The position numbers and the translations under genes were made by a program. From Rebecca billardiae RCC1528 (taxonomy: Eukaryota; Protista; Haptophyta), in contig OZ251223.1 of NCBI GenBank assembly GCA_965240325.2, positions 930,001 to 994,000 of the forward strand: a stretch of DNA of 64,000 bases, given 5' to 3'. Below are positions 48,385 to 64,000 of this stretch, piece by piece. How positions within the stretch are numbered: position 1 is the stretch's first letter; each line of letters starts with the position of its first letter. The notes below the pieces were generated by a model. The model was not told the origin of the DNA, did not search any database, and worked only from the letters and a program-made list of their open reading frames with translations.

Positions 48385-50128
48385 GTCTAGCCGTCCTCGT
48401 GAACGCCGACGCCAACTGCTGGCCGAAGGTGGGCACGCCGCCTGGCATGTCGATGCCGAGGCGGCTGCGTGTGTTCCTACTCAGTGGGATTTACGTGTCC
48501 TCATGCCTTGGCGAGCGGCAGCAGATGCGGTGGGCATGCCGCTCGCCGTCGACGAGACGCGGTGCGTGAGTGATCCCGCGCGGACGTCCGCTGACGGAAG
48601 GCTGAGCGCCTGCGGACTCGTCGACTGAACCTCCACCTGACCGCCCGGGAGCAGCACTGCTGGGGACCTAACCTGAAAAACCCAATCGTGTTGGGAGGCA
48701 GGGGGTCACATGAGCCCTAAGTGCAGCGCCGCAAGACCGGGCGGTCGGACGGCGGGTGTTGTGATCCCGCCGCCCGAGCACCAGACCAACGGGCCCTGGG
48801 TGGGCGGGTTGCCGAAAGATGTTGGTCGGTGCACGCGACGCGCCACCCGCGTGCGAGCCGCCGCCGCCGGCGACGCAGGACGAGCTTGGCTGGAGCCATC
48901 TCGCACGCCGCGCCTGGCGAAGCAGGCGGCAGAGGCCGGCGCCGGAAATCGATCTCCTGGGCGGCAGAACAACCCGGACAGACTGTTTGTCCGGGAGCAG
49001 CGCCCTTTGAGGCGATGGTCTGGTAGAGGGCGATGTGGCTGATGAGCGGCGCTGGCGCCCGGCGTTCTTGTCGTCCTCTTAGACAATCAGTTATTGTACC
49101 AATAACCCCACGTCTAGCCGTCCTCGTGAACGCCGACGCCAACTGCTGGCCGAAGGTGGGCACGCCGCCTGGCATGTCGATGCCGAGGCGGCTGCGTGTG
49201 TTCCTACTCAGTGGGATTTACGTGTCCTCATGCCTTGGCGAGCGGCAGCAGATGCGGTGGGCATGCCGCTCGCCGTCGACGAGACGCGGTGCGTGAGTGA
49301 TCCCGTTTCATGGTGTGTTGGGGAGCACCGCGTGGAGGAGAATCCCATTGAGTGATGGGAAGGAAAGGGGGCAAGGCACGTGTGAGTCGCGCACGCACGA
49401 GGGCCGGCCAGCGGGGGCTGGGCAGGTGGGGCAGTGCGAGTGAGACGGAACCCGAATAGGAGAGATAGCAGGCAGCCGGCCCCGAGGCGCGGCGCTGCGG
49501 AAGCAGGAGAAGGCTAGACGGCCTTTGCGGATGCTGTGAATGGCCCGCGGGTGCGCACGGGGCCCGGCGCGCGGTGTGCCGCCAGCGGTCCTTGTGTAGG
49601 AGCCGGCTGGCGTTGGCACCGGGGCGATCCCGAGGCAGGGCGGGAGAGATGGAGCAGCGATCCGCGTGGGGGCGCACCCACGGAGGAGGAGGCATGTGGC
49701 GAAGAGGGAACGGTGCGATCGGGGCGGGTGCGGAAGAGCCACAGGGTGCGCACGCACACAGAGAGAGAAGAGGCGGTGGCCCGAAGCGCGAGGGGGCGCG
49801 ATGCGGAGCGTTGCTTACCGCCGAGTTGCCGAAAGATGTTGGTCGGTGCACGCGACGCGCCACCCGCGTGCGAGCCGCCGCCGCCGGCGACGCAGGACGA
49901 GCTTGGCTGGAGCCATCTCGCACGCCGCGCCTGGCGAAGCAGGCGGCAGAGGCCGGCGCCGGAAATCGATCTCCTGGGCGGCAGAACAACCCGGACAGAC
50001 TGTTTGTCCGGGAGCAGCGCCCTTTGAGGCGATGGTCTGGTAGAGGGCGATGTGGCTGATGAGCGGCGCTGGCGCCCGGCGTTCTTGTCGTCCTCTTAGA
50101 CAATCAGTTATTGTACCAATAACCCCAC
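48385..50128. mobile_element. 1,744-bp non-coding element with split direct repeats A-X-B-A-Y-B, inserted in (TA)n
   Basis: A1 48385-48578 = A2 49112-49305 (194 bp); B1 48808-49111 = B2 49825-50128 (304 bp); unrelated X (229 bp) and Y (519 bp); internal junction CCCCAC|GTCTAG joins the right end to the left end. Confidence 0.8.
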
Positions 50129-50367
50129 ATATATCGATATAGTATGATAGTTCCGCGCGCGACAGGCGGCTTACACTTCAGCTTCTGCGACTGCAGCGCA
50201 GCATCATCAGCTACAGTATATATAGACTATAGAGTGATGGCTGCTATGGCATCGCAGATACGACATGATCGCGATCTGCTGCTGCAACGCTGCGCATCAT
50301 GCGTCACTGCTCATGCTGCATGGTCGTCGACGTCGTACGCGCAGGCGGCGCAGCAAGCGTCGCGCCA

Positions 50368-53300
50368 TCATGCCGCGTCATCAGCGACAAGGATCTCGTC
50401 GTCCTGCGTGTGCCGATGATGAAAGTCGCTCATGCCGTGACCGCGAACATGATGACGAAGGTGGCTGGGGGTGCACTTGCGCTGCACGCGAACAAACGCA
50501 ATGCCGTAGCCCAGCGCTGCGCCAACGACCAGACCGACAACAGCACTGGTGATCATCGCGCCCATGTCGGCGGTCTTGCTCGAGGACGCCTTGAGAGCAG
50601 ACGATTCGAGCGAGGCAACGCACGGGCTTGGCGAGGGCGAGGGCGAGGGCGAGGGTGAGGGCGAGGGCGAGGGCGACGGGCTTGGCGACGGGCTTGGTGA
50701 TGGCGATGGCAACGGGCTGGGTGACGGCCCGGGCGAGCCCGCGCCGAACCCCTCGTTCGCCGCCGCGAGCAGCACGCCGTTCTTGTCGTCGCTCGCCTCC
50801 CACCACATCAGCCCGCCCAGGTTGTGCGCGCGCGCGTAGCTGCCCTTGGCGCGCACGGCTTCGGCGTCGTCGTACGAGATGAAGGTGGAGCCGCCCGAGA
50901 GGTACGGCACGCCCGCGGGGTCGGACCACACGCGCGTGTACGTCCCCGACGCCGCGCTGCCGTGGGGTGGCGGCACAAAGTTCGCCTCGAGGTCCCAGTA
51001 CGAGCGCACTCCGGCCTCCCACGTGCCCGCGGCCGCGCCCGTGCCCTGTCCGTACTCGCTCGGGCTCGGCTCGGTGGTGCTCCACGCGCGCCCGTACGCG
51101 GGCAGGCCGAGCACGAGCTTGGACGAGGGCACGTCGCCAAGCCAGAGCTGCACGCCCCAGTCGATGTTGTACCGCTCGTCGCCGCCCGCCGCCACGTACT
51201 CCGGGTCGTTGTACAGCGGCGCGTTGTGCGCGAGGAGCGGCGCCCAGCTGCCGTGATAGTCGTAAGTCATGAGATAGACAGCGTCGAGCACCTCACCAAG
51301 CTGGGCGCGCGGCGCGGCCCCCGAGACGTTCGGATTCATCCCCATCGCGATCGTGAGCTCCTTGTGCACGCCCGGCCAGCGCGCGTCCATCGCCGCGCGC
51401 AGCTCGGTGAGCAGCGAGAGGTAGTTCACCCAGTCGTCCGGCCGCTCGCCGTTGCCGTCCTCGCCGCAGCACACCGGGTACTCCCTGCGGGAACGAGACG
51501 CGGCGCGCGCCGGGGGAGGACACGCGAGCGTGGTGAGCCGCGCGCGCCCCGCGCACTCGCGCCCGCGCGCACGCCTCGAACATGCCGCGCGCGCACCAGT
51601 CCACGTCGATGCCGTCCATGCCCGTGCGCTCGAGCATGGCGACCGCCGAGCTCACGAGTCCGGCGCGGCCGCTCGGGTCGGCGGCGCATGCAGAGAAGTG
51701 ATCAGATTTGGTCCAGCCGCCGAGCGAGAGCGAGACGTGCAGGTGCGGGTGCTGCCGCTTGAGGATCTGGAAGGCGCCCATGTTGCCGTGCATCGTCCCC
51801 GGCGGGTCGTTCCAGCTCATGCCGAGCTCGGGGTACACGATCTCAAAGTCGGCCCACGCGTCCAGCGTGCTCACGTCGCACGCCGACGTCACGTCGAAGA
51901 AGGCGTACAGGACCTGAGCGCACGCGGAGAGTCGGAGAGAGGGCGGGGCCGTGCGCAGATCGCGTGGCGCGTGCAGTCGTCAGCGGCGGACCCGCGTTGG
52001 GCCGCGCGCGCGGCGGCGTGGCGCGTGCGCGCACGTGCGTGATTGACTCGAACTGCATGTGCCACGGCTTGAAGCCGCGCCCGTAGATGCCCCACTGCGT
52101 GAAGTACTGCACCACGCGCGAGCCGGTGGGAGCCGGGCCGGGCGAGGGCGAAGGGGACGGCGACGGGCTGGGCGAGGGTGAGGGCGAGGGCGATGGCGAG
52201 GGCGAAGGCGATGGCGATGGCGAGGGCGATGGCGAGGGCGAGGGCGAGGGCGAGGGCGAGGGCGAGGGCGAGGGCGAGGGCGAGGGCGAGGGCGAGGGCG
52301 AGGGCGACGGTGATGGCGATGGGCTCGGCAAAGGCGAGGGGGACGGTGACGGCGACGCTGCACCTGCGCAGGTCACGGTAGGCGCCTGTGAAGTGCCCTG
52401 CGCTGAGAAGCCAACGTGGCCCGCTGCCCATCCAGACACGAGGACAACATGGTACTTCTGCCCGCTGCTCTGGGAAAGCTGCAGTAGGATTGACGCGGGG
52501 GCAGGGCGGGGCGGGAGGGGGCGTTTGCGTGTCAGCATGTCACGCGCGTACGTAGGGCGCGGCCGAGGAAGCTCGACGCGAGCTCACCTCTCCGTTCCAA
52601 AAGTTGCTCACCACCACATCTGTGGCCGAGTAGTCGACGACAATCTCGAGGCCGCCCACCCACGGGCTGATGTCGATCCTGCCGCCAAAGCCTCCGGACC
52701 AGCTGCTCGTCTGCACAAAGTTGAAGGCAGGGCAGTCGGGGCTCGGCGAGGGGCTCGGCGAGGGGCTCGGCGAGGGGCTCGGCGACGGGCTTGGCGACGG
52801 GCCCGGCGACGGGCTGGGTGACGGGCTGCTTCCATCGAAATCGTCGTACAGCGAGCGCACGGCCTGGCTCACCTGCGGCGCCGACGCGACGTCGGCCGAG
52901 GCCGCCCAGAAGAAGGTGCCGCCGTGCGCTGGCTCGAGCTCGAGCAGCGTGGACACGGCCGCCGACGCCTCCGCGGCGTCCGAGTTGGAGCCCGTCCCGG
53001 AGCAGTCGGAGATGCACATGCCGACGTGCACCATGGACGCATCTCCACCGAACACGTGGTCGCGCAGCGCGCGCAGGTTGGGAAGTGGGTCCTGCGAGCT
53101 TCCGTCGCCCGTGTTGCGCACGCGGTACGGCCCGTTGTAGTACTGGACGAGCACCTTGTCGATCGCCGGCGGCGTCTGCGAGGCGAGGTCCTGCAGGCAG
53201 CGGAAGTAGGTGTCGCCCTCGTCGACCGTGCCGTCCATGGGCGCGTGCGCGACGAGCTTGTCCGGCATCGCCGCCTTGAGGCCGGTCGAGAGCTCGGCGA

Positions 53301-54987
53301 GGAAGTTGCGCTGCGCGAGCGCCTGCGCCTCGCCGAGCATCACCGGCGTGTGTGGCGTGGGCGTGTCCCACGACCGACCGTCGAGGAAGTACTCGTAGTC
53401 GATGTCGACGCCGTCAAACTCGTATGCTGTGACGCGCAGCGGCCAGGGCCACATGTTTGGCGGGCCGCCGGGGCGGGCGGGGCGCGCGCGCAGATGAGAG
53501 TGAGCGCCGAGCGCACTCTGAGGGCGATCAGGATGAGCGCGCGCGCGCTCGTGCGGGCTCGTGGCGGCCAGGCAGGCGCAGCGCAGCGCGCGGGTTATCC
53601 TCGCGCACCTTGCACGAGCGCTTGCAGCTGCGTGACGAGCGCCGCCTCCTTGCCAAAGCAGTGGTCCCAGCAGTGGTTGCCGCCCTTGGTCAGCGAGGAG
53701 TCAGTCCACAGCCCGCCCATGCCGGCGCCGCCAAAGCTGACGAGCACGCGCTTGCCCTGCGCGCGCCACTGCGCGACGATCGCGGGGTCGGCATTGTTGC
53801 CGCAGATGGGCACGGTCGGCGGGACGGTGCACGTCTCGTCGCACAGATTGCCCGACGCAGCCCACGTGTACGTGACTGCGAACGCGACGACAATGGTCGA
53901 GTACGGGGTCACGTCCGCTGGGCAGGGCAGCCAGTTCTCGACGTACATGCTGAGCTCGTGCGCGCGCTCGACGGGCGGTGGCGTCGGCGGCGCGGGCGGA
54001 GGGGCCGGGGGCGACGGGCTGGGCGGCTGCACCGGCGGCGGCGACGGCGACGGCGGGCTGTGGGGGGCGGGCTCGGCGTCAGAGTCGTACGAGGCCACAG
54101 CCGGGCCAGCCAGGTACTCGACGCCAAACTCGCCGTCGTACGCGCGGCGGTAGCAGTTGCCCATGGTCTCGGGCGTGCACCGGGATGCGTCGCTGGGCAA
54201 GTGGTCGAACGGGGATGAGATGCTTGTCACAGGCGCCACCTTGGACAGGAAGGACTCGTGGCTCTCGGACGTGCCGCTGATGGTCACGTCAGCGCAGGTG
54301 GCAAAGAACTCGAGGTCGGTCACCTGCTGCACGGACGCCCACTCCCAGCGCAGCACGCAGTGGTCGCACGACGGGAGCCAGTCCGGAAGCGTCACGGGCC
54401 ACGAGTTCACCGACGGCGGCGAGAGGCCGTTGAAGCCGGCGTCGTACACGTCCTTGTCCACGCAGCCCGGGAAGGCGGCCAGCTTGATCCAGCGCTCTGG
54501 CTCATCCACGTTCGAATCGTACGAGATGTAGCTGGGCCGCGAGGCGGGGCGGGGGGAGGGGGCACGCAGGGCGTGAGGATGCGTTTGCGTGCGCGCGCCA
54601 GCTCGCGCATCTCGGTCGCCCGGCGCACCCGCGACGCTGCGCGCATGCCGCGCGTGGCACTCACAGGTAGCAATCACCAGGGTGCGGCGCACTCAGCTCC
54701 CACGAGACCGTGATGGTCTCACCCGCGGCGTAGGCTTGGAAAGGCGGTGATGCCGGCCGTGACTCACGGCAACGTAAGGCGTTGTGCGAGTACTGGTGCA
54801 TCGAGATCGACAACGGCCCTGCCAGCTTGTACACGGGCTCGTCGAGGCGGTACGTGGCAGTCGGCGACGTGTGCGCTCCGTCGTCGTACTGCGGCAGCCA
54901 GAGCGGAGGGCGAGGGGTGGGCTGGGACATGTGGCCATGGCCACGCGCAAGCGCAGGAAGCAGTGCGAGGAGGAGCCGGCGAGGCAT
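50368..54987 (-). CDS. Multimodular membrane-anchored chitinolytic enzyme: signal peptide - LPMO - GH18 - (PS)n - CBM2-like - (PS)n - GH18 - (PS)n - TM; introns 54532-54664, 53427-53608, 52479-52587, 51914-52034, 51485-51596
   Basis: Signal [16 protein letters not shown] followed by His1 ([11 protein letters not shown]), [24 protein letters not shown]; GH18 motifs SFGG...FDGVDIDYE and SLGGW...MDGIDVDW|EYP, MTYDYHG, WEAS; [24 protein letters not shown]; five GT-AG introns join the exons in frame. Confidence 0.87.
52135..52356 (-). repeat. Coding hexamer repeat encoding a (Pro-Ser)n linker; similar tracts at ~52738-52826 and ~50622-50740
   Basis: (GGCGAG)n on the + strand translates as SPSPSP on the coding strand. 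Confidence 0.9.
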
Positions 54988-56182
54988 CACACGGCGGTGT
55001 CCGAAGGGCGTGGCAGCCGCGCGAGCGAGCAGAAGACGGTGCCGCGGGCTGGGCGGGTCGTTAGCTCCTTGGGCGCGGTGCGGGCGAGGAAAATGATGCC
55101 GCCGACAAGATGATATCAGGAAGGAAAAGGACACCCCGTCGGACGAATGGCCGTTTGCTGGCTTATTCGTTTGACGAATACAAACACTTGGAAGGAAGGT
55201 TCGTCCAGTCGAGTGCATCGAATTCTGAGACGGTGATGACCGAGCCACGATGAATCCAGCAGCTATCTCAAATAAAAAGAGCAATCCGGCGACGTCACCG
55301 GCGGCGGCGGCGGTCCGGCCAGGGCCAAGCGATTTACAGCTTGCCCATGATGCTTTACTAAGACGGCTGGACTCTGACAAGTGACAGCAGAGTAAGAGCT
55401 CACAGTAGCGGAGCCGCGCTGGCAACCGTGCCGTGCGCGGGCTGGCGTGCCGCACAGGGTTATATCACGGTGTCATATCACTATCAGCCATCACGGGCCC
55501 CCGCGCGCGCGGCCCCGACTCGCCCGCGCGGCCCGGCCCGGGGCGGCCCGGCGGCTGACTGCCTCGAGTCCTCACGCGGATCTGACAAATTTACTACCGT
55601 ATAGCTACACGAGCTGCCTGCGGACCGTAGACTCAGACTGGCGCAGCACGGCCCGCGCCGCTGACAGAGATTGAGAGAATAATCATCTAAATGATGGCGC
55701 AAATGTCAATGCGGCCCGCCGGCCCGGGGCCGGGGCTTCCGGGCCGCAGACGCAGTCGCCCGGACCCGGTCGCCGCCGCCGTGAGCGCGCCCCGTCGCCG
55801 TCGGCGCCGCGGCGCGCCGCGGTCGGCGGGGCGGCCGATCCCGGCCATCCGAGAATATACGAGTACCAGGGGGGCTCCGGCTCGTGAGTTCAGAGTTGCC
55901 ACGAGCACGCGGCTTCGCGTCGCGCGAATTAGGCGCAGGCTCGTCGGATTCCGCGCGGATTTGAAAGAGGCCTGCTGAAGCGTCTGCCGGGCCGCAACGC
56001 AGACGCGCGGCTGCGCCATCGGTCGCCCGATGCGCCTTGGTAGACCTATTGGTGAGGTACAAGTAGCAAGCAGATGACCCACGTCACTGCGGCTACAACC
56101 TGCCGCGCGCGCCGCGGCAGCGCCGAGCGCCCGGCGGCGGCGGCCTGAGCCACGTGCTGATCGCCGGGCGCGCGCGGGGCGG

Positions 56183-58086
56183 CTACACGGTGAGTCGGCT
56201 GAGGAGCGCGTGCGTGACGCCGTGCGTCTGGAAGATGGCCTGCGAGAGGTTCATCCCGTGGTGCAGCTGCGCCTTGGCGAGCCATGGGATGCACCCCTTG
56301 ACCATCTCGATGTCGGGGTCGAGCCGGATCGAGAGGCCCTCGCACACCTTCATCGCGAGCGCGATCGTGATGAAGTTGCCCTCGAGCTTGACCTTGTGCG
56401 TGCACGCCAGGTTGAAGATGCGCGCCGTGTACTCGGCAAAGTTCTGGAAGAAGGGCATCGTCTTGGAGTCGTCGATGATCTGCTGGATGCCGTCGCAGAA
56501 GCCGTCCACGTCGGCGCACAGCTGCTCGCTCGCGTTCTCCACCATCAGCTTGCCCGCCTCCTTGCCGTCCCAGCTGAGGAACGCGTGCATGATGGAGAGC
56601 ATCATCTTGTGCGTGTCCGGCCGCAGCTCCTGCGAGGCGGCGGCGGGGACGGGTCGGCGTCGTCGGCGCGGGCGCGTGGGCGCGCGCGCGCGCGCGCGCT
56701 CCGTCCGTTGGCCGCGCGCGCGCGGGCGCACGCGTGCTCGCGCGCGGTGCGGTGCGCGGTGCGCGGCGCGCTCACCTTGACGATGCCCGCGTCGAGGTAG
56801 ATCATGACGAGGTTGCCGACGGTGCCGCTCACGAGGATGTTGCCCGGGTGCAGGTCGCAGTGCACGAAGTTGTCGATGAAGATCATCTTGGCCATCGAGT
56901 TCATGCCGAGGCGCGAGAGCTCCTTCTTCGACTCGGCGCAGCACGCCTCCGACTCGATGAACTGCGTGATGGGCACGCCGTCCTCGAAGGTCTCGATGAG
57001 CACGTCGCGCGAGGTGTGCTCCATCACGGGCAGCGGGATGTGTATGCCCCTGTCCTCCGAGAAGTTCGCGTGCAGCCGCTGCAGGTTGTGCGCCTCCTGC
57101 CGCAGGTCCAGCTGCCACACCATCTGGAGCGCAAAGTCCTCAACCACATCCGGTAGCGAGAGCCAGCGCAGCGCGGGCACGAGCGCGAGCGCGCGCGCGA
57201 TCGAGCGCATGATGTCGAGGTCGACCGCGACCATGTACTCGACCCCCGGGTGGATCACCTTCACCGCCACCTCCATCGGCCCCGTGAGCACGCCGCTCGC
57301 CGCGAGCGGCCGCTTGGGCGTGAGCGTGCCCTTGTACACCTGCGCGATGCAGCCCGAGCCAATCACCTCCGGCCGCAGCCGCAGCTCGGACTCCCAGCCC
57401 GGGCCGAGCTCGCGCGCGAGGATGCGCTGCGTGTCGCGCCACGGGTGTGGGAACACCGAGTCGTGCAGCCGCTCGAACGTCCGGCAGAACTGCTCGGGGA
57501 ACAGGTCGGAGCGCGAGCTCGCCCACTGCGCGAGCTTGATGTACGTCGGACCGGCGCGGTGCACGGCGCGCAGCGCGTACTCCCAGCAGAGCTCCTCGAT
57601 GAGCGGGATCAGCCGGCCAAGCGTCAGCGCGAGCGGCACGCCGAAAACCAGCGGGAGCGAGAGCAGCATCAAGCTCAGCACGCGCCGGATCATCCGCGTC
57701 AAGCGCGAGAGCATGGGGATGTCGTCGTTGATCACGATGCGCGGCTTGCTCGTGCGCCTGACGACGTGCGCGGAGCGCTCGTGGAGGAATTTGCTGTCGC
57801 ACGCGGCCATGCGCTGGTCCGCCAGCGCTCGCGCGGCGCCCCAGGTGCACGCTGCCGCCACCACCACGCCGCCACACTGCGCGCCCATCCGCGCGGCGGC
57901 CGCAGCCGCTGGCTGCGCCAGGACGTGCTCGTGGCGCAGATGCTGCAGGGCGAAGCTCGCGGAAGCGCGCTGGTGGGTGAGTGCGCTCATTGGGCGCTCG
58001 AGCCTCACCAGCGCGCGCGGCGTCGCGGCCGCAAAGGCCGGGCGCCGCGCCCAGCCGGCTCGTCGCATCATCAGGCCCTGCATCAT
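56183..58086 (-). CDS. ABC1/ADCK (UbiB/AarF) atypical kinase, ADCK2-like, probably mitochondrial; intron 56630-56775
   Basis: GPTYIKLAQWASSRSDLFP, GSGCIAQVY, VAVKVIHP, QLDLRQEA, FVHCDLHPGNIL, YLDAGIV|KEL, VKLEGNF; transit-like N-terminus. Confidence 0.9.
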
Positions 58087-58508
58087 CGCGGGTGATGTCA
58101 CCCAGTTCTCCGGCAGCCGCCCTGCGCGGCCCCTTTTCTTTGCTGATGACAGTTTTCATTTTCAATTGCCGAAAGGAGCACGGCGGCGGAAATCTAAATC
58201 TCAGACTGGGCGACCCACATACGCCTCCCAACGGGCGGTTACAAGGCTTCAAGCTGCAGATCATAGCTCGCTCGCGGCGAGATCGGTTCGTTGGCAACCG
58301 ATCTAGCCTACGTCCGAATATGGAGCTTTCGCTCAGATATCGAATTGCAGCGCGACCCATAGCTATCTTTCTTCGGCGCGACTTTAATCAACGCTCAGTT
58401 GCCGCGAGCTCGCTTACCCGCCCAGGGCCCTTGCTTGCCTCAGCAGGGAGGCGACCTCTTGCCACAGGGCGCTCGCCAACCCCCGGCGCCAAGCAGCGCT
58501 TGGCAGCG

Positions 58509-61500
58509 ATGGGTTGCGCGCCGTCCAAGCCCCAGACAGCGGAGAACCCGCAGAGGGCGACCAACTCTCGTGCGTGCTTCCCCGCGCGCGAACGCTCCGT
58601 GCGCAGCCGGGGCGTTTGTGCACGCGCGGACGCCGGACTGCGTTTGGCTGTTTCGCGCGGGCTGCCGGGCTGGTGGTGCCCGCTCACGCGCCGATCTCGC
58701 CGCGCGCACGCGCAGGCCCGACGCTGGCGAGCGACGAGCAGGAGTATGCGCAGCTCAGTGAGGTGCGCAGCCCCTCACGCCGGCCCGCACGCGCGCGCGC
58801 CATTCGGTGTGGCTCACGCCATCAGCGCCCGCGCGTCGGCCTGGCTCGCGCGCCGCAGAAACTCTTCTCGAACGCCGGGAAGGCGCGCACGCTCAAGGAG
58901 GGGGACGTGATCATCGAGGAGGGCAAGATGACCCTCTCGTTCTTCTTCATCCGCGACGGCGTCGTCTCCCTCGTCAAGAAGTCGGGCGACGGCACGCCGG
59001 ACAAGGAGATTGCGAAGCGCAGCAAGGGCAACATCATCGGAGAGATGTCCTTCCTGACTGGCGAGGCGCCGGGTGTGACGATCATCGCGAAGAGCCCGAC
59101 GGTGAGCGTATGGGAGGTGGAGCACAGCCGCGTCGTCGCGCAGCTCAAGTCCAACCCGCACGACCTCGGCCTGCTCTTCAAGATGGTGCGCGGCGCGCTG
59201 GCAGCCGCCGCAGCATGCGCGCGCGCGCACGCGCAGCGGTCGGCCCTGGCCCGATGTGCCGCCCGCGCGCCGTGCGACGACGCGGTGCTGGCGCGCGGTG
59301 CTGACGCGCGCCCTCGCGGCCGGCTGCGTTGGCGGCGGCGGCGGCGACCCTGCGCGCGCTCGCGCCGCGCAGATGGCCACCTACCTGGGCGACCGCATTT
59401 CCGAGCTCTCCTCGCAGCTGCGATCAGAGGTCGCGTCCGATGACGAGGTGACGTCCAAGAAGCTCGCCGCGCCCACCGACGGCGGCGGCGCGCACAACGT
59501 GGTCAAGTACCGGATGCTGTTCGGCATCAAGGGGGAGGAGCAGCTGATGATGCGCACGACGTGCTCGATGCGCAAGGAGGTGAACGCCGTGAAGGACCCC
59601 AACGTCGCCTTCGGCGAGATGTTCATCTTCGAGCAGCACCTGTGCTTTGACTGGAAGGTGTTTGGCTTCCACCGCCAGCTCTCTGTGCCGTTCACCGAGG
59701 TGCTCGCGGTGCTGATCACGCGCACGAAGCAGGTGGAGGTGCAGTGCAAGGGCATGTCGTACGAGCTCAGCTTCACCGAGCGGCAGGACGAGATCCTGCA
59801 GCTCATGGAGCACTGCCGCAAGAACGTGCGCGCGCGCGAGCTGAACGCGGAGCTCAAGTCGTCACTCTCCGAGGGCGGGCGCGAGTGGCTGCAGGGCGAC
59901 GAGCAGGAGATGCTCGCCGAGCTGCTCGAGGACAAGGCGGCGCTGGGGCTGGGCTTCCCGGTGTCGTCGGACAACAAGGGCGGCGCGCAGGCCCTCGACA
60001 TGACGCTCACCGAGAAGGACTGGGAGCTCTTCCTCTCCGGCTCCAAGCTGCGCAAGTACAAGCGCGACGAGACGGTGATCCGCGAGGGCCAGCCGACCGC
60101 CGCGCTGTACCAGATCATGCAGGGGCGCGTGCGCGTCGAGCTGCAGCTGCCGCAGCAGTCCAAGTCGATCGTGGTGGCGCACCGCAGCGCGGGCGACATG
60201 TTCGGCGAGATCTCGCTGCTCAAGCTCGGCCACGCCACCGCCTCCATCGTCGCCGACGACGAGTCGGTCGTGATGTACATTCTCGAGGGCCAGTACCTCG
60301 ACTCGCTCTTTCGCACCGAGCCGGGCCTTCCATCTCGGTTCTACTGCTTCCTCGCCACGACGCAGGCGAGCCGGCTGAAGGAGCTCTCGGCGTCGGCGGT
60401 GTCGTCGACGAAGCGCGAGGTGCACGCGTCGAACTACGCGCGGCTCACCATCTCGCAGGTCATGGGCAACGCCGCGTACAAGCGCATCTACCGCAAGTAC
60501 CTCGTGCGGCACGAGCAGGAGGCGGGCGACAAGAAGCAGTCGGCCGCGTGGCTGCACGCGTTCGAGCTGCACACGGAGGCGATGGCGGTGAAGGTGGCGC
60601 CCGACGCGGAGCAGCTGGTCAAGCTCGGGAACAAGGCGTACGACAAATTCCTCGCGGCCGACGGCGAGGTGAAGGACGGCGTCGCCGTGCGCAAGGCGCC
60701 GGAGGAGACGCTGGAATTTGTGACGGACGCGCACCGCGCGCGCGCGCGCGCCGCGCTCGACGAGGTCGCGCGCAAGGGCGACGACGCGGGGCCCAAGGCG
60801 CTCAAGGAGGCGCGCGCGGCGTTCGCGGACGTGGAGCTCGCGTCGATGCACGCGCTCGAGGGCCCGCCGTTCGACGCGTTCCTCGGCTCGGAGCACTACG
60901 GCTACGTGCTCGAGCTCAAGGCGAAGGAGGGCCACGTGCCCGGCCTCGCAGACTTCAGGCTCGTGCGCGTGCTCGGCCAGGGCGGGTTCGGGCAGGTGCT
61001 CGAGGTGGTGAAGCGCGACTGCGGCAAGCGGTACGCGATGAAGGTGATGCACAAGGAGATGATGCGCCGCTCGCTCGGCTCCTCGTGGCAGCGCAAGATC
61101 GGCCTCGAGCGCGACCTCCTCGCCTCGCTCGACCACCCCTTCCTCGTCAACCTCAAGTACGCGTTCCAGAACACGGAGTTCCTCGTGCTGGTGATGGACC
61201 TCGTGCGCTCGTCCGACCTGAGCGAGTTCGTGCTCGGCAAGCGGCGGCTAACGCGCGCGCAGGTGAAGTGGGTGATCATGGAGGTGATGGTCGTGATGCG
61301 CTACATCCACAAGCAGGGCGTGCTCTACCGGGACCTCAAGCCCGAGAACCTGCTCGTCGACGCAGACGGCCACATTCGGCTGATTGACATGGGGCTCGCC
61401 GCGCGCATCTCGGAGAAGCACCCAAAGCGCATGTCGCGCGTCGGAACGGACATCTACATGGCGCCCGAGGTGCGGTTCGTGAAGGAGCGCAAGGAGGGGT

Positions 61501-62232
61501 ACGGCGTGCTCGCGGACTGGTACACCGTCGGCGTGCTCATGTACGAGCTCACCACGGGGCACACGCCGTACGTGATCAACGACGACCACGACCCGCCCTA
61601 CCGCGAGCACCCGTTTGGCGACGATCGGATGGATGACTTTGTGCGCCGGCTGTGCGAGAAGGACAAGAAGCGCCGCCTCGGCGCGGGCGCGAGGGGCGTG
61701 AACGAGATCTTCGAGCACCCGTTCTGGGAGGGCATCGACTGGGAGGTCGTGGAGAAGCGCACGATGCCGAGCCCGATGCTCTCCATCGGTGCGCGCTCGG
61801 CGGGCGCGAGTCGGGCGCGCGAGCGCGCGTGCGGCGGCGCCCCGCGAGCGCGCGCGCCCGGCTGACTCGCTGCCGCCGCGATCGCGCGCGATACCCTGCG
61901 CGCGCAGAGCGCATGAAGCTGGGCCGCAAGAAGAAGGAGAAGGAGAACCAGGCGCAGCAGACCGCGAACGACCTCGCCGAGGCTGAGCGAGAGGAGTTCG
62001 ACGACGAGTTCCACCTCAAGGTGAGACAGCAACGAGCCGCCGCGCGCACCGCCGCGCACCGCACCGCGCGCACCGCGCCGCGCGCGCGCCGCTTCGACGT
62101 GGCTCACGCAGCGCGCGCCCCTGCTGCCCGCGTGCGCACTGCTGGCGTGTGCAGTCGTGGGACTTTGTGGCGCCGGCGGCCATCGTAGAGGAGTACCTCG
62201 AGAACATCAACCACACAATCTCGACCATCTGA
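58509..62232 (+). CDS. Lipid-anchored AGC/GRK-like Ser/Thr kinase with two cNMP-binding-like domains, a GRAM/PH-like and an RGS-like domain; introns 58570-58715, 58763-58858, 59186-59372, 61789-61907, 62021-62154
   Basis: MGC N-terminus; GDVIIEEG...IIGEMSFL and VIREG...MFGEISLL; GEMFIFEQHLCF; helical region ending FDAFLGSEHY; LGQGGFG, YAMK, YRDLKPEN, DMGLA, GTDIYMAPE; C-terminal SWDFV. Confidence 0.85.
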
Positions 62233-62669
62233 TGCCGCTGCTGAGCCTGATGATGGACGTCGATCGACAACACCTGCGGCAGCGGGCGGCGCGCCGCCAC
62301 CGGCGCGGCACGTGACGTTAATTGCGTGTACTAACTGTTACACACGATCCGCCGCGGGGGAACCGTCTCCGGTTCAGACTCTGGCGCTGATTGATGCTGC
62401 GCGCGTACTCGTCATCGTCGATTCGTCTGATTATGTTTGCTATTCGGCGGCAGCAGGCCGGCAGCGGCGGCGGGGGCTGCCGTGCCGCGTGCGCGGCGGT
62501 CGGCGGTCGGCGTCACTGGCTTCGTTGCCAACTCGACGGGAGCGCGATCGAAAAAGGAAACGCATTTTGGGGGGCGCCCGCTTTAAAAAAAATATTTGCG
62601 CCAACCGCCGCCCCCCCGGGCCGGACGCGTCGCGCCCCACCCCGTGCCGCGGCGCCCGCCACCGCCGAG

Positions 62670-63551
62670 ATGCCCGTCACATTCGTGCGCATCCCGTGCG
62701 ACAGCTCGGCTCCGCTCGAGGAGCTGACACTCGAGGATCCCGCTGGCGGCAAGAAGGCGGGCGAGGACCTGCTGCGCGCGCACCTCGTGCCCAAGTTCAA
62801 GCAGGGCTCCGTCGACCCAGGCGCCGTCAAGAAGCAGCTCGGTGACTACTCGGCGCAGCTCGACATGTCCATGCTCGAGCAGGGTGCGGTGGAGACCTTC
62901 CCGCTCACGCGGCCGACCGACGTCAATCGGCAGGTAGGCGTCACCCTGTACTTGGACGAATGCGGCGTCCTCAAGAACCTGCCGCGCAACGAGCGCGCGA
63001 CGGCGCTCGCCGAGCAGGCAGGACACACCACCCCGTTCCATGGCGACATCTACGTCTCGCGCGAGCAGCACGGGCCGGACGGGCGGCAACTCGCAGACTT
63101 CACGCTGGCGGACATGTCATCGGACGCGCCGTGGCTCCTCAGTGCCCCGGCGCAGAACTATGAGCACGCCGTCGCGACGAAGAAGCTGCACGACTCGATG
63201 GGCGACGGCTTTCAGCACATCAAGCTGAACGAGGGCATGGACGGCACCGACCTGACCAGCGGCGGTGGCGAGGGGTACACGTGGACGCAGACGTCGGAGG
63301 AAGTCGAGGTGGTCATCCCCGTCGCGGCTGGCGTCAAGGCGCGCGAGGTGCACGTCAAGTACGGCGTCGGCTCCTTGCTCGCGAGAGTTGGCGGCAGCGA
63401 CCCAGTCCTCGACGCTCAGCTCGAAGGGCGCATCCGACCGGACGAGTCCAGCTGGAGCATCAGTGGCGATGGGGACTCGCGGACGCTGCAGATCACGCTC
63501 GAGAAGCAGACACCTGGACCATGGAAGTCGCTGCTCGCCGGGAGCAGCTAG
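62670..63551 (+). CDS. CS/p23 (NudC-like) domain protein
   Basis: YTWTQTSEEVEVVIPV...LEGRIRPDESSWSI...LQITLEK; N-terminal region with LYLDECGVLKNLPRNERAT..FHGD. Confidence 0.8.
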   Translation: MPVTFVRIPCDSSAPLEELTLEDPAGGKKAGEDLLRAHLVPKFKQGSVDPGAVKKQLGDYSAQLDMSMLEQGAVETFPLTRPTDVNRQVGVTLYLDECGVLKNLPRNERATALAEQAGHTTPFHGDIYVSREQHGPDGRQLADFTLADMSSDAPWLLSAPAQNYEHAVATKKLHDSMGDGFQHIKLNEGMDGTDLTSGGGEGYTWTQTSEEVEVVIPVAAGVKAREVHVKYGVGSLLARVGGSDPVLDAQLEGRIRPDESSWSISGDGDSRTLQITLEKQTPGPWKSLLAGSS

Positions 63552-64000
63552 TGACCACAACCGATGGTGATGTACTAGCTATCACTACTTTGGGCTATGG
63601 TACCGCCTACGACTGCTCACGGACTACACGGATCACGACTTCAGACTTGGCTTCCGTGACCTCTGGGGCTCTGAGGCTCTCAGATTCTCATCAGCTCTGG
63701 AACGCAGCGCCGGCACCGCGGTTGCCGGTTGGCTGAGGGCACAGCGTTCGACAGTGATTGACAACGCCGCAGTTAGTGTCCGCCGGACGCGGCCTGCACC
63801 GGGCCTGCGCTTAGCTGATAGCTCAGTCCGATCATCCGCTACTACGACCGTACTTGATGTCATCAGTGAACCTTTGGTGCCCACTCCGAGTCGTGGGACA
63901 CCGCCTGAGTGCCGGCGCCGCAGCTGTCTTTATAGGCGAGTCGTCGTGCTGATGACGGCGACGCGATATTCGTCGATGAATGCTCATTGAGAGTCGCGAT

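Follow-up and report, generated by a model that had tools for sequence, protein, structure and literature searches.

LPMO-GH18 fusions, in which a lytic polysaccharide monooxygenase (LPMO) and a GH18 chitinase share one polypeptide, are already known. In a CAZy-based survey, the LPMOs that carry an additional GH18 or GH9 domain are for the most part AA15 and in a few cases AA10 enzymes, and glycosylphosphatidylinositol (GPI) or LPXTG anchors also occur (PMC8615602); the chitinase catalogues of the diatoms Thalassiosira pseudonana and T. weissflogii include LPMO_10 as an auxiliary domain and predicted transmembrane helices (PMC7874618, PMC12028343). In Paenibacillus sp. FPU-7, the chitinase ChiW is held on the cell surface and has two GH18 domains (PMC5132251). 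Here, we analyze a gene of the haptophyte Rebecca billardiae RCC1528, located on the minus strand of a 64,000-nucleotide stretch of contig OZ251223.1 (assembly GCA_965240325.2, positions 930,001 to 994,000; hereafter the window). Comparison of its translated exons with uninterrupted homologues confirms a single six-exon gene encoding one membrane-anchored chain of an LPMO, two GH18 domains (GH18a and GH18b) and a module resembling the carbohydrate-binding module (CBM) family CBM2. An earlier note on this DNA had proposed such a protein and stated that LPMO-GH18 fusions are known, as the survey and the diatom catalogues cited above bear out; what is new here is the combination of an LPMO from a separate clade with two unlike GH18 domains, a CBM2-like module and an anchor. 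We regard this as an unusual arrangement within a known class of chitin-degrading enzymes and as no new principle.

The diatom LPMO_10-GH18 chitinases and the AA15/AA10-GH18 fusions of CAZy (PMC7874618, PMC12028343, PMC8615602) share with the window protein an N-terminal LPMO and a GH18 domain in one secreted chain. GH18a is of the same subfamily as the diatom enzymes (48-56% identity), and some of the diatom proteins, too, have predicted transmembrane helices. In contrast to these fusions, however, the LPMO of the window protein comes from an AA9/AA11-like protist clade and is not of the LPMO_10 or AA15 type, and a second GH18 domain of another subfamily, a CBM2-like module and a C-terminal anchor are added. 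ChiW (5GZT/5GZU) is likewise a surface-held, multi-modular protein with two GH18 domains, and provides the best solved match to GH18b (5GZU, 1.9e-56), but it is a bacterial protein that lacks an LPMO and whose two GH18 domains resemble each other.

Gene structure and splice junctions

The exon chain was found from the region 49800-55600 and its list of open reading frames (ORFs), which contains a chain of long minus-strand ORFs with GT..AG signals at their ends; exact boundaries were set by pattern matching. Each of the five introns has the form GT..CAG and a length not divisible by three, so all must be removed for the frame to hold. The summed exons give a coding sequence of 3963 nt, equal to 1320 codons plus one stop, and the GC content at third codon positions (GC3) is 0.77-0.93 across all exons and 0.81-0.93 in exons 2-6, in a window of 70% GC. 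The encoded modules follow in the order signal peptide, LPMO, Pro/Ser linker, GH18a, (Pro-Ser)n, CBM2-like module, (Pro-Ser)n, GH18b, (Pro-Ser)n, transmembrane helix and His-rich tail (Table 1).

A search for RNA sequencing runs listed none, and the junctions were tested by BLASTP of the exon translations against uninterrupted homologues (cited below by our protein numbers), together with multiple alignments. Homologue coordinates continue across four of the five junctions, with exactly one residue to spare wherever a codon is split (Table 1), and the junction at intron 3 was read from an alignment (A4) in which FWNGE and LSQSSG, from either side of the intron, stand against VWGGQLTSSTG of P0085. 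The multiple alignments of homologues gave the same picture. All five predicted junctions are thus residue-exact against uninterrupted homologues, and the claim that removal of five introns leaves one ORF holds. L002, tried as a control for intron 2, was unusable, diverging past SFGGAGMG.

The placement of introns and linkers further argues for a single polypeptide. Every intron lies within a domain (one each in the LPMO, GH18a and the CBM2-like module, two in GH18b) and every inter-domain linker lies within an exon, so that each exon joins two neighboring modules, and it is very unlikely that the modules are secreted as separate proteins. There is no stop in frame downstream of the LPMO; the sole Met ahead of GH18a, located in the first beta-strand of that domain, lacks a leader sequence, and none of GH18a, the CBM2-like module and GH18b has a start codon carrying a leader.

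A tblastn search of the window revealed no further copies. The Logan contig L001 (run ERR14847148) is 99.89% identical to window positions 52756-64000 (11.2 kb), a level of identity that marks it as the same species, from another assembly or haplotype. It shows four exon and three intron differences from the window, too few for a selection test; across the gene the two sequences differ by a single indel, located in intron 2. About 110-270 bases past the stop codon (50368), at window positions 50100-50260, there is an AT-rich island containing TA repeats, which may represent the 3′ untranslated or polyadenylation region or the edge of an element at 48385-50128.

The LPMO domain

The first H of HGHM, residue 17, is assigned as His1 because HG is conserved directly after the hydrophobic leaders of homologues. 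The predicted cleavage, between ALARG and HGHM, fits the −3/−1 rule and aligns with the HG that follows the leaders of those homologues that keep their N-terminus, in which the pattern HG[HRY][ML]..P.[PA]R stands directly behind the leader. The key residues are His17, His102 (in HPGDC), Glu182 and Phe184 (the EFF of LEFFATC); both histidines of a putative copper brace are present, in keeping with the histidine-brace LPMO directly behind a signal peptide that the earlier note had described. The LPMO core is followed by a conserved C-terminal extension that is common to the relatives in its clade.

Intron 1 splits the domain, and its two halves score 15.2 and 15.3 bits against the Pfam AA9 family (PF03443, cut-off 27.8); the AA9 and LPMO_10 matches of both halves are weak but collinear. 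Relatives with a complete LPMO domain reach 33.3-61.6 bits for AA9, above the cut-off, and, with the exception of P0090 (no LPMO_10 match), they also exceed the LPMO_10 (PF03067) cut-off of 23, with 27.7-35 bits that are always lower than their own AA9 scores. Searched alone against PDB sequences, exon 1 gave nothing useful and exon 2 gave a weak match to AoAA11 (4MAH). The two LPMO pieces are 70% and 66% identical to P0085, which has MMETSP backing; a word search placed the clade relatives at 41-59% identity, and an exhaustive search with exon 2 returned 359 relatives. The clade, made up of marine protists with many transmembrane-anchored members, carries the motifs [RNTP]H[PA]GDC, RWEW and [EQ]-x-[YF]-x-x-C. 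HPGDC is present in all but one of the aligned relatives (P0002 has HAGDC), and the second brace histidine in all of them. The axial residue is Phe in the window gene, P0085, P0003, P0005 and P0087, and Tyr in the other clade members.

A profile of the clade matched AA11 structures in the PDB at 1e-7 to 3.5e-7 over 120-170 residues, AA9 at about 1e-6, AA16 and AA10 at about 2e-3 to 2e-2, and the AA15 structure 5MSZ at 8e-3. An AlphaFold model of the homologue P0007 (pLDDT 78, pTM 0.78) had only LPMOs among its structural matches, with Z scores of 12.4 for AA11 (7P3U), 12.1 for AA15 (5MSZ), 10.8 for AA9 and AA16, about 10.3 for AA10 and 10.1 for AA13, and its alignments to the solved LPMOs mostly begin at residue 1. 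The fungal AA11 enzymes (AoAA11 4MAH, AfAA11B 9EXJ, 7P3U), the best matches by profile and by Z score, share with the window protein the N-terminal His, a second His before a conserved Cys, and Glu-x-aromatic-x-x-Cys-Ala. However, the alignable stretch is restricted to about 120-170 residues at 18-24% identity, and Glu182-Phe-Phe184 stands where AA11 has the axial Tyr of Glu-x-Tyr (EMY in AoAA11). The window LPMO also starts with HG, as do AA10 and AA15, and AA15, AA9 and AA16 are structurally nearly as close as AA11. By sequence and, via its relatives, by predicted fold, the N-terminal domain is an LPMO, and on the same evidence its clade is about equally far from AA11, AA15, AA9, AA16 and AA10, with no family standing out. 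This agrees with the suspicion in the earlier note that the LPMO may fit existing AA families poorly.

The HG start, HPGDC, RWEW, Glu/Gln-x-Tyr/Phe-x-x-Cys and the conserved extension may serve as hallmarks of a family. Literature searches yielded no paper that deals with this LPMO clade, with haptophyte LPMOs or with AA11 in Emiliania. P0010 and P0028 of the LPMO clade and P0251, a relative of GH18b, have at their C-terminus a Cys-rich module that resembles fungal CBM1 and ends in W/YSQCRP; P0010, the one protein scanned, gave no Pfam match for this module.

The GH18 domains, the CBM2-like module and the membrane anchor

Both GH18 domains carry an intact DxxDxDxE motif and are dissimilar, as had been claimed; GH18a is of the hevamine/class III-like type and GH18b of the ChiA1/ChiW-like type. 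In GH18a, the motif FDGVDIDYE (Asp420, Asp423, Asp425 and Glu427) lies at the start of exon 3 and aligned to the same motif in all homologues; a QYYNG motif is also present. Its exon pieces, split by intron 2, did not match PF00704 whereas collinear homologues pass (P0017, 62.5 bits), and when its two halves are aligned along P0017, P0008, P0059 and P0015, they leave a single residue for the split codon. A profile of the GH18a family matched the GH18 chitinase 6K7Z in the PDB at 4.6e-23, the next matches being class III and further GH18 enzymes, and relatives (400 residues, PF00704) come from the diatoms Stephanodiscus and Thalassiosira, from Diplonema papillatum and from a Myxococcales genome bin.

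GH18b is a canonical GH18 domain by its sequence matches. Its catalytic motif spans intron 5, with DGIDVDW before the intron and the catalytic Glu encoded directly after it, at the start of exon 6 (Asp943, Asp946, Asp948 and Glu950), and it also contains the motifs SLGGW, MTYDYHGSW and MWWEASDD. PF00704 was matched by exon 5 with 59 bits (8e-16) and by exon 6 with 138.2 bits (6.5e-40), against a cut-off of 29.6, and in the PDB ChiW was followed by ChiA1 (1ITX, 3.6e-49). The domain is collinear with P0241, P0243 and P0251. Relatives at 50-60% identity come from plankton contigs, several of them with a terminal transmembrane helix (P0241, P0251), and P0245 is a tandem of this domain.

The halves of the module between the two GH18 domains align with both modules of P0085; alone, they gave no Pfam match and nothing useful in a PDB sequence search. 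Its Trp residues lie in WSGGF, FWNGE and SGWAAG. The P0085 module reaches 21 bits on Pfam CBM_2 (PF00553, E = 4.4e-4), under the cut-off of 24, and the module is therefore named CBM2-like and is not filed as a CBM2 member. In the PDB, the top matches of the module profile were two CBM2 modules and the C-terminal binding region of ChiA74 (E = 0.04-0.4). With a model of P0085 residues 305-415 (pLDDT 75.6), Foldseek ranks 1-17 were all CBM2-type domains that bind cellulose, xylan or chitin, or chitinases that contain such a domain (13 of the 17 at E ≤ 0.001; TM-scores 0.45-0.63), including the chitin-binding domains of Streptomyces Chi18aC and of Pyrococcus and Thermococcus chitinases. The closest homologue of the module is thus predicted to have a CBM2 fold, in keeping with the Trp-containing CBM2-like module described in the earlier note; the long (Pro-Ser)n linkers, C-terminal transmembrane helix and His-rich tail described there are likewise all seen in the gene.

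Exposure of His1 requires the LPMO to stand at the N-terminus, which leaves the C-terminal end of the chain as the only place for a tether. Basic residues (in RVQRK) come directly after the transmembrane helix. Beyond RVQ, 37 residues remain, seven of them His, and the tail contains DDEILV, which we take to resemble an acidic dileucine endosomal sorting signal. A like C-terminal anchor is present in P0085, P0086, P0090, P0241 and P0251, and by sequence a membrane tether appears to be usual in these protist families. Among relatives, a single C-terminal transmembrane helix is frequently combined with the LPMO clade, with GH18a or with GH18b (P0086, P0090, P0105, P0241, P0251).

Table 1. Features of the gene in window coordinates, with the homologue residues flanking each tested junction
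Feature	Position	Strand	Remarks
Whole gene	50368..54987	-	six exons, five introns, 1320 codons + stop; frame consistent, all junctions collinear with homologues
Exon E1	54987-54665	-	pattern-matched splice boundaries
Intron 1	54664-54532	-	133 nt; against P0085, E1 end 111, E2 start 113; 1 residue (Leu) for split codon
Exon E2	54531-53609	-	pattern-matched splice boundaries
Intron 2	53608-53427	-	182 nt; against P0017, E2 residue 306 = 255, E2 end 256, E3 start 258; 1 residue (Ala)
Exon E3	53426-52588	-	pattern-matched splice boundaries
Intron 3	52587-52479	-	109 nt
Exon E4	52478-52035	-	pattern-matched splice boundaries
Intron 4	52034-51914	-	121 nt; against P0251, E4 end 27, E5 start 28; 0 residues
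Exon E5	51913-51597	-	pattern-matched splice boundaries
Intron 5	51596-51485	-	112 nt; against P0241, E5 end 113, E6 start 115; 1 residue (Trp)
Exon E6	51484-50368	-	pattern-matched splice boundaries
Signal peptide, residues 1-16	54940..54987	-	hydrophobic leader directly before HGHM; predicted cleavage
LPMO, residues 17 to about 255	54090..54939	-	contains intron 1; weak Pfam AA9/LPMO_10 on both halves
Pro/Ser-rich linker 1	53967..54089	-	inside exon 2, frame uninterrupted
GH18a, class III/hevamine-like	52840..53966	-	contains intron 2; without insertion domain
(Pro-Ser)n linker 2	52735..52839	-	inside exon 3
CBM2-like module	52368..52734	-	contains intron 3; Cys at both ends
(Ser-Pro)n linker 3, about 80 residues	52119..52367	-	inside exon 4; ORF 51843..52538
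GH18b, ChiA1/ChiW-like with insertion domain	50749..52118	-	contains introns 4 and 5
(Pro-Ser)n linker 4 and juxtamembrane stalk	50566..50748	-	from sequence
Transmembrane helix	50491..50565	-	best 19-mer mean Kyte-Doolittle 2.07; then RVQRK
Cytosolic tail, about 40 residues, 7 His	50371..50490	-	stop codon 50370-50368

Related architectures

Fusions of LPMO_10 with GH18a-type domains recur (P0027, P0119, P0131, P0199); the P0131 cluster has one member from the ‘merc’ collection. P0199/P0221, an intronless ORF of 1342 residues (L003:3001-7029, NCBI GCA_977009605.1), matches the window gene in having, in order, a signal, an LPMO, a GH18a-type domain, a second GH18 domain and a C-terminal transmembrane helix with a tail. 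It differs in that its LPMO is of the LPMO_10 type, Cys-rich modules are present rather than CBM2, there are no introns, and its second GH18 domain is class III-like and not ChiA1-like (no BLASTP match to exons 5 and 6). Judged by these sequences, the two architectures are analogous, not orthologous. A further chain, P0088 (1011 residues, from a 908-kb ENA contig), combines LPMO_10, a GH5 cellulase and GH18.

The N-terminal domain of the window protein could represent an undescribed LPMO family of marine protists, usually tethered by a C-terminal transmembrane helix, with the set of an LPMO, two GH18 domains and an anchor assembled at least twice from different parts (in the window gene and in P0199); we put this forward tentatively and regard it as doubtful at present.

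Proposed function and alternative explanations

We propose that one nuclear gene encodes a type I membrane protein of ∼1320 residues in which an LPMO, a class III-like GH18 domain, a CBM2-fold module and a ChiA1/ChiW-like GH18 domain act jointly on chitin, a reading to which we assign a probability of roughly 0.78. Four luminal or extracellular modules would be carried on flexible Pro/Ser linkers, held by a single transmembrane helix with a short cytosolic tail. The CBM2-like module would keep the chain on crystalline chitin, while the copper LPMO, farthest from the membrane and with His17 as its mature N-terminus, would introduce oxidative nicks into crystalline chains. GH18a, with an open cleft, could make internal cuts in the loosened chains and GH18b could attack from the new chain ends, the products being freed beside the enzyme-bearing membrane, either at the cell surface or, via endocytic sorting, in a digestive vacuole.

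Several points weigh against this proposal. For the LPMO, GH18a and CBM2, the fold evidence was obtained on homologues (42-70% identity), Phe184 occupies the axial position at which most clade members carry Tyr, and the gene may have internal promoters or alternative splicing. Class III-like GH18 enzymes are able to act on other N-acetylglucosamine polymers too. Finally, other clade members carry CBM1-like or other modules (P0010, P0028, P0002), so that chitin is only a putative substrate of the LPMO.

The CBM1-like modules of the LPMO clade also fit a different role, in which the same protein remodels a chitin- or cellulose-like polysaccharide of the organism's own wall, scales or filaments and is not directed at prey or parasites. 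The relatives of GH18a include diatom chitinases (P0008, P0031, P0044), and diatoms produce chitin of their own (PMC7874618); the ligands of CBM2 modules include both cellulose and chitin, and tethering would be suited to work on the cell's own surface. However, an LPMO together with two hydrolases of different type is more like full degradation than trimming, and we consider remodeling unlikely, if still a serious contender. A role confined to metal binding is more improbable: here, the N-terminal domain would resemble LPMOs and bind copper but leave polysaccharides uncut, as in copper capture by the GPI-anchored, LPMO-like X325 proteins of fungi (mentioned in PMC8615602), with the His-rich tail passing on the metal and the GH18 domains as the only enzymes. 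P0086 and P0090, which consist of an LPMO-clade domain and a transmembrane anchor only, and the density of His in the tail are consistent with such a function, but in the window protein the domain shares its chain with two chitinases and a CBM2-like module and retains both brace histidines as well as the Glu-x-aromatic motif of active LPMOs, and the nearest solved structures are active AA11 and AA15 enzymes.

The least probable of the alternatives is that the gene model is wrong and the locus contains two or more separate genes, the open linker frames being by-products of 70% GC and in-frame hexamer repeats. Long ORFs do occur in all six frames of the window, and an open linker alone is weak evidence because long ORFs are common in this GC-rich DNA. 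Against such a split, however, stand the frame that continues past the LPMO, the position of every domain boundary inside an exon and of every intron inside a domain, the lack of a start codon with a leader at GH18a, the CBM2-like module and GH18b, and the high GC3 maintained through exons 2-6. Related single-chain proteins are moreover known as a transcript (the 90% cluster of P0085 has an MMETSP member) and as an intronless ORF (P0221), and on this combined evidence separate genes are very unlikely.

Implications

As a variation on known multi-modular chitinases, the protein proposed here, acting jointly on chitin with its LPMO and two GH18 domains, would come as a moderate surprise to a specialist. 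Its LPMO clade, without clear placement in a CAZy family, is of enzymological interest, and the chain offers a natural test of the effect of proximity on LPMO-chitinase synergy. [quoted passage not shown] Should the new LPMO family and its repeated assembly with two GH18 domains and an anchor also prove true, membrane-bound oxidative chitin breakdown would be a common, unstudied trait of marine eukaryotic plankton.

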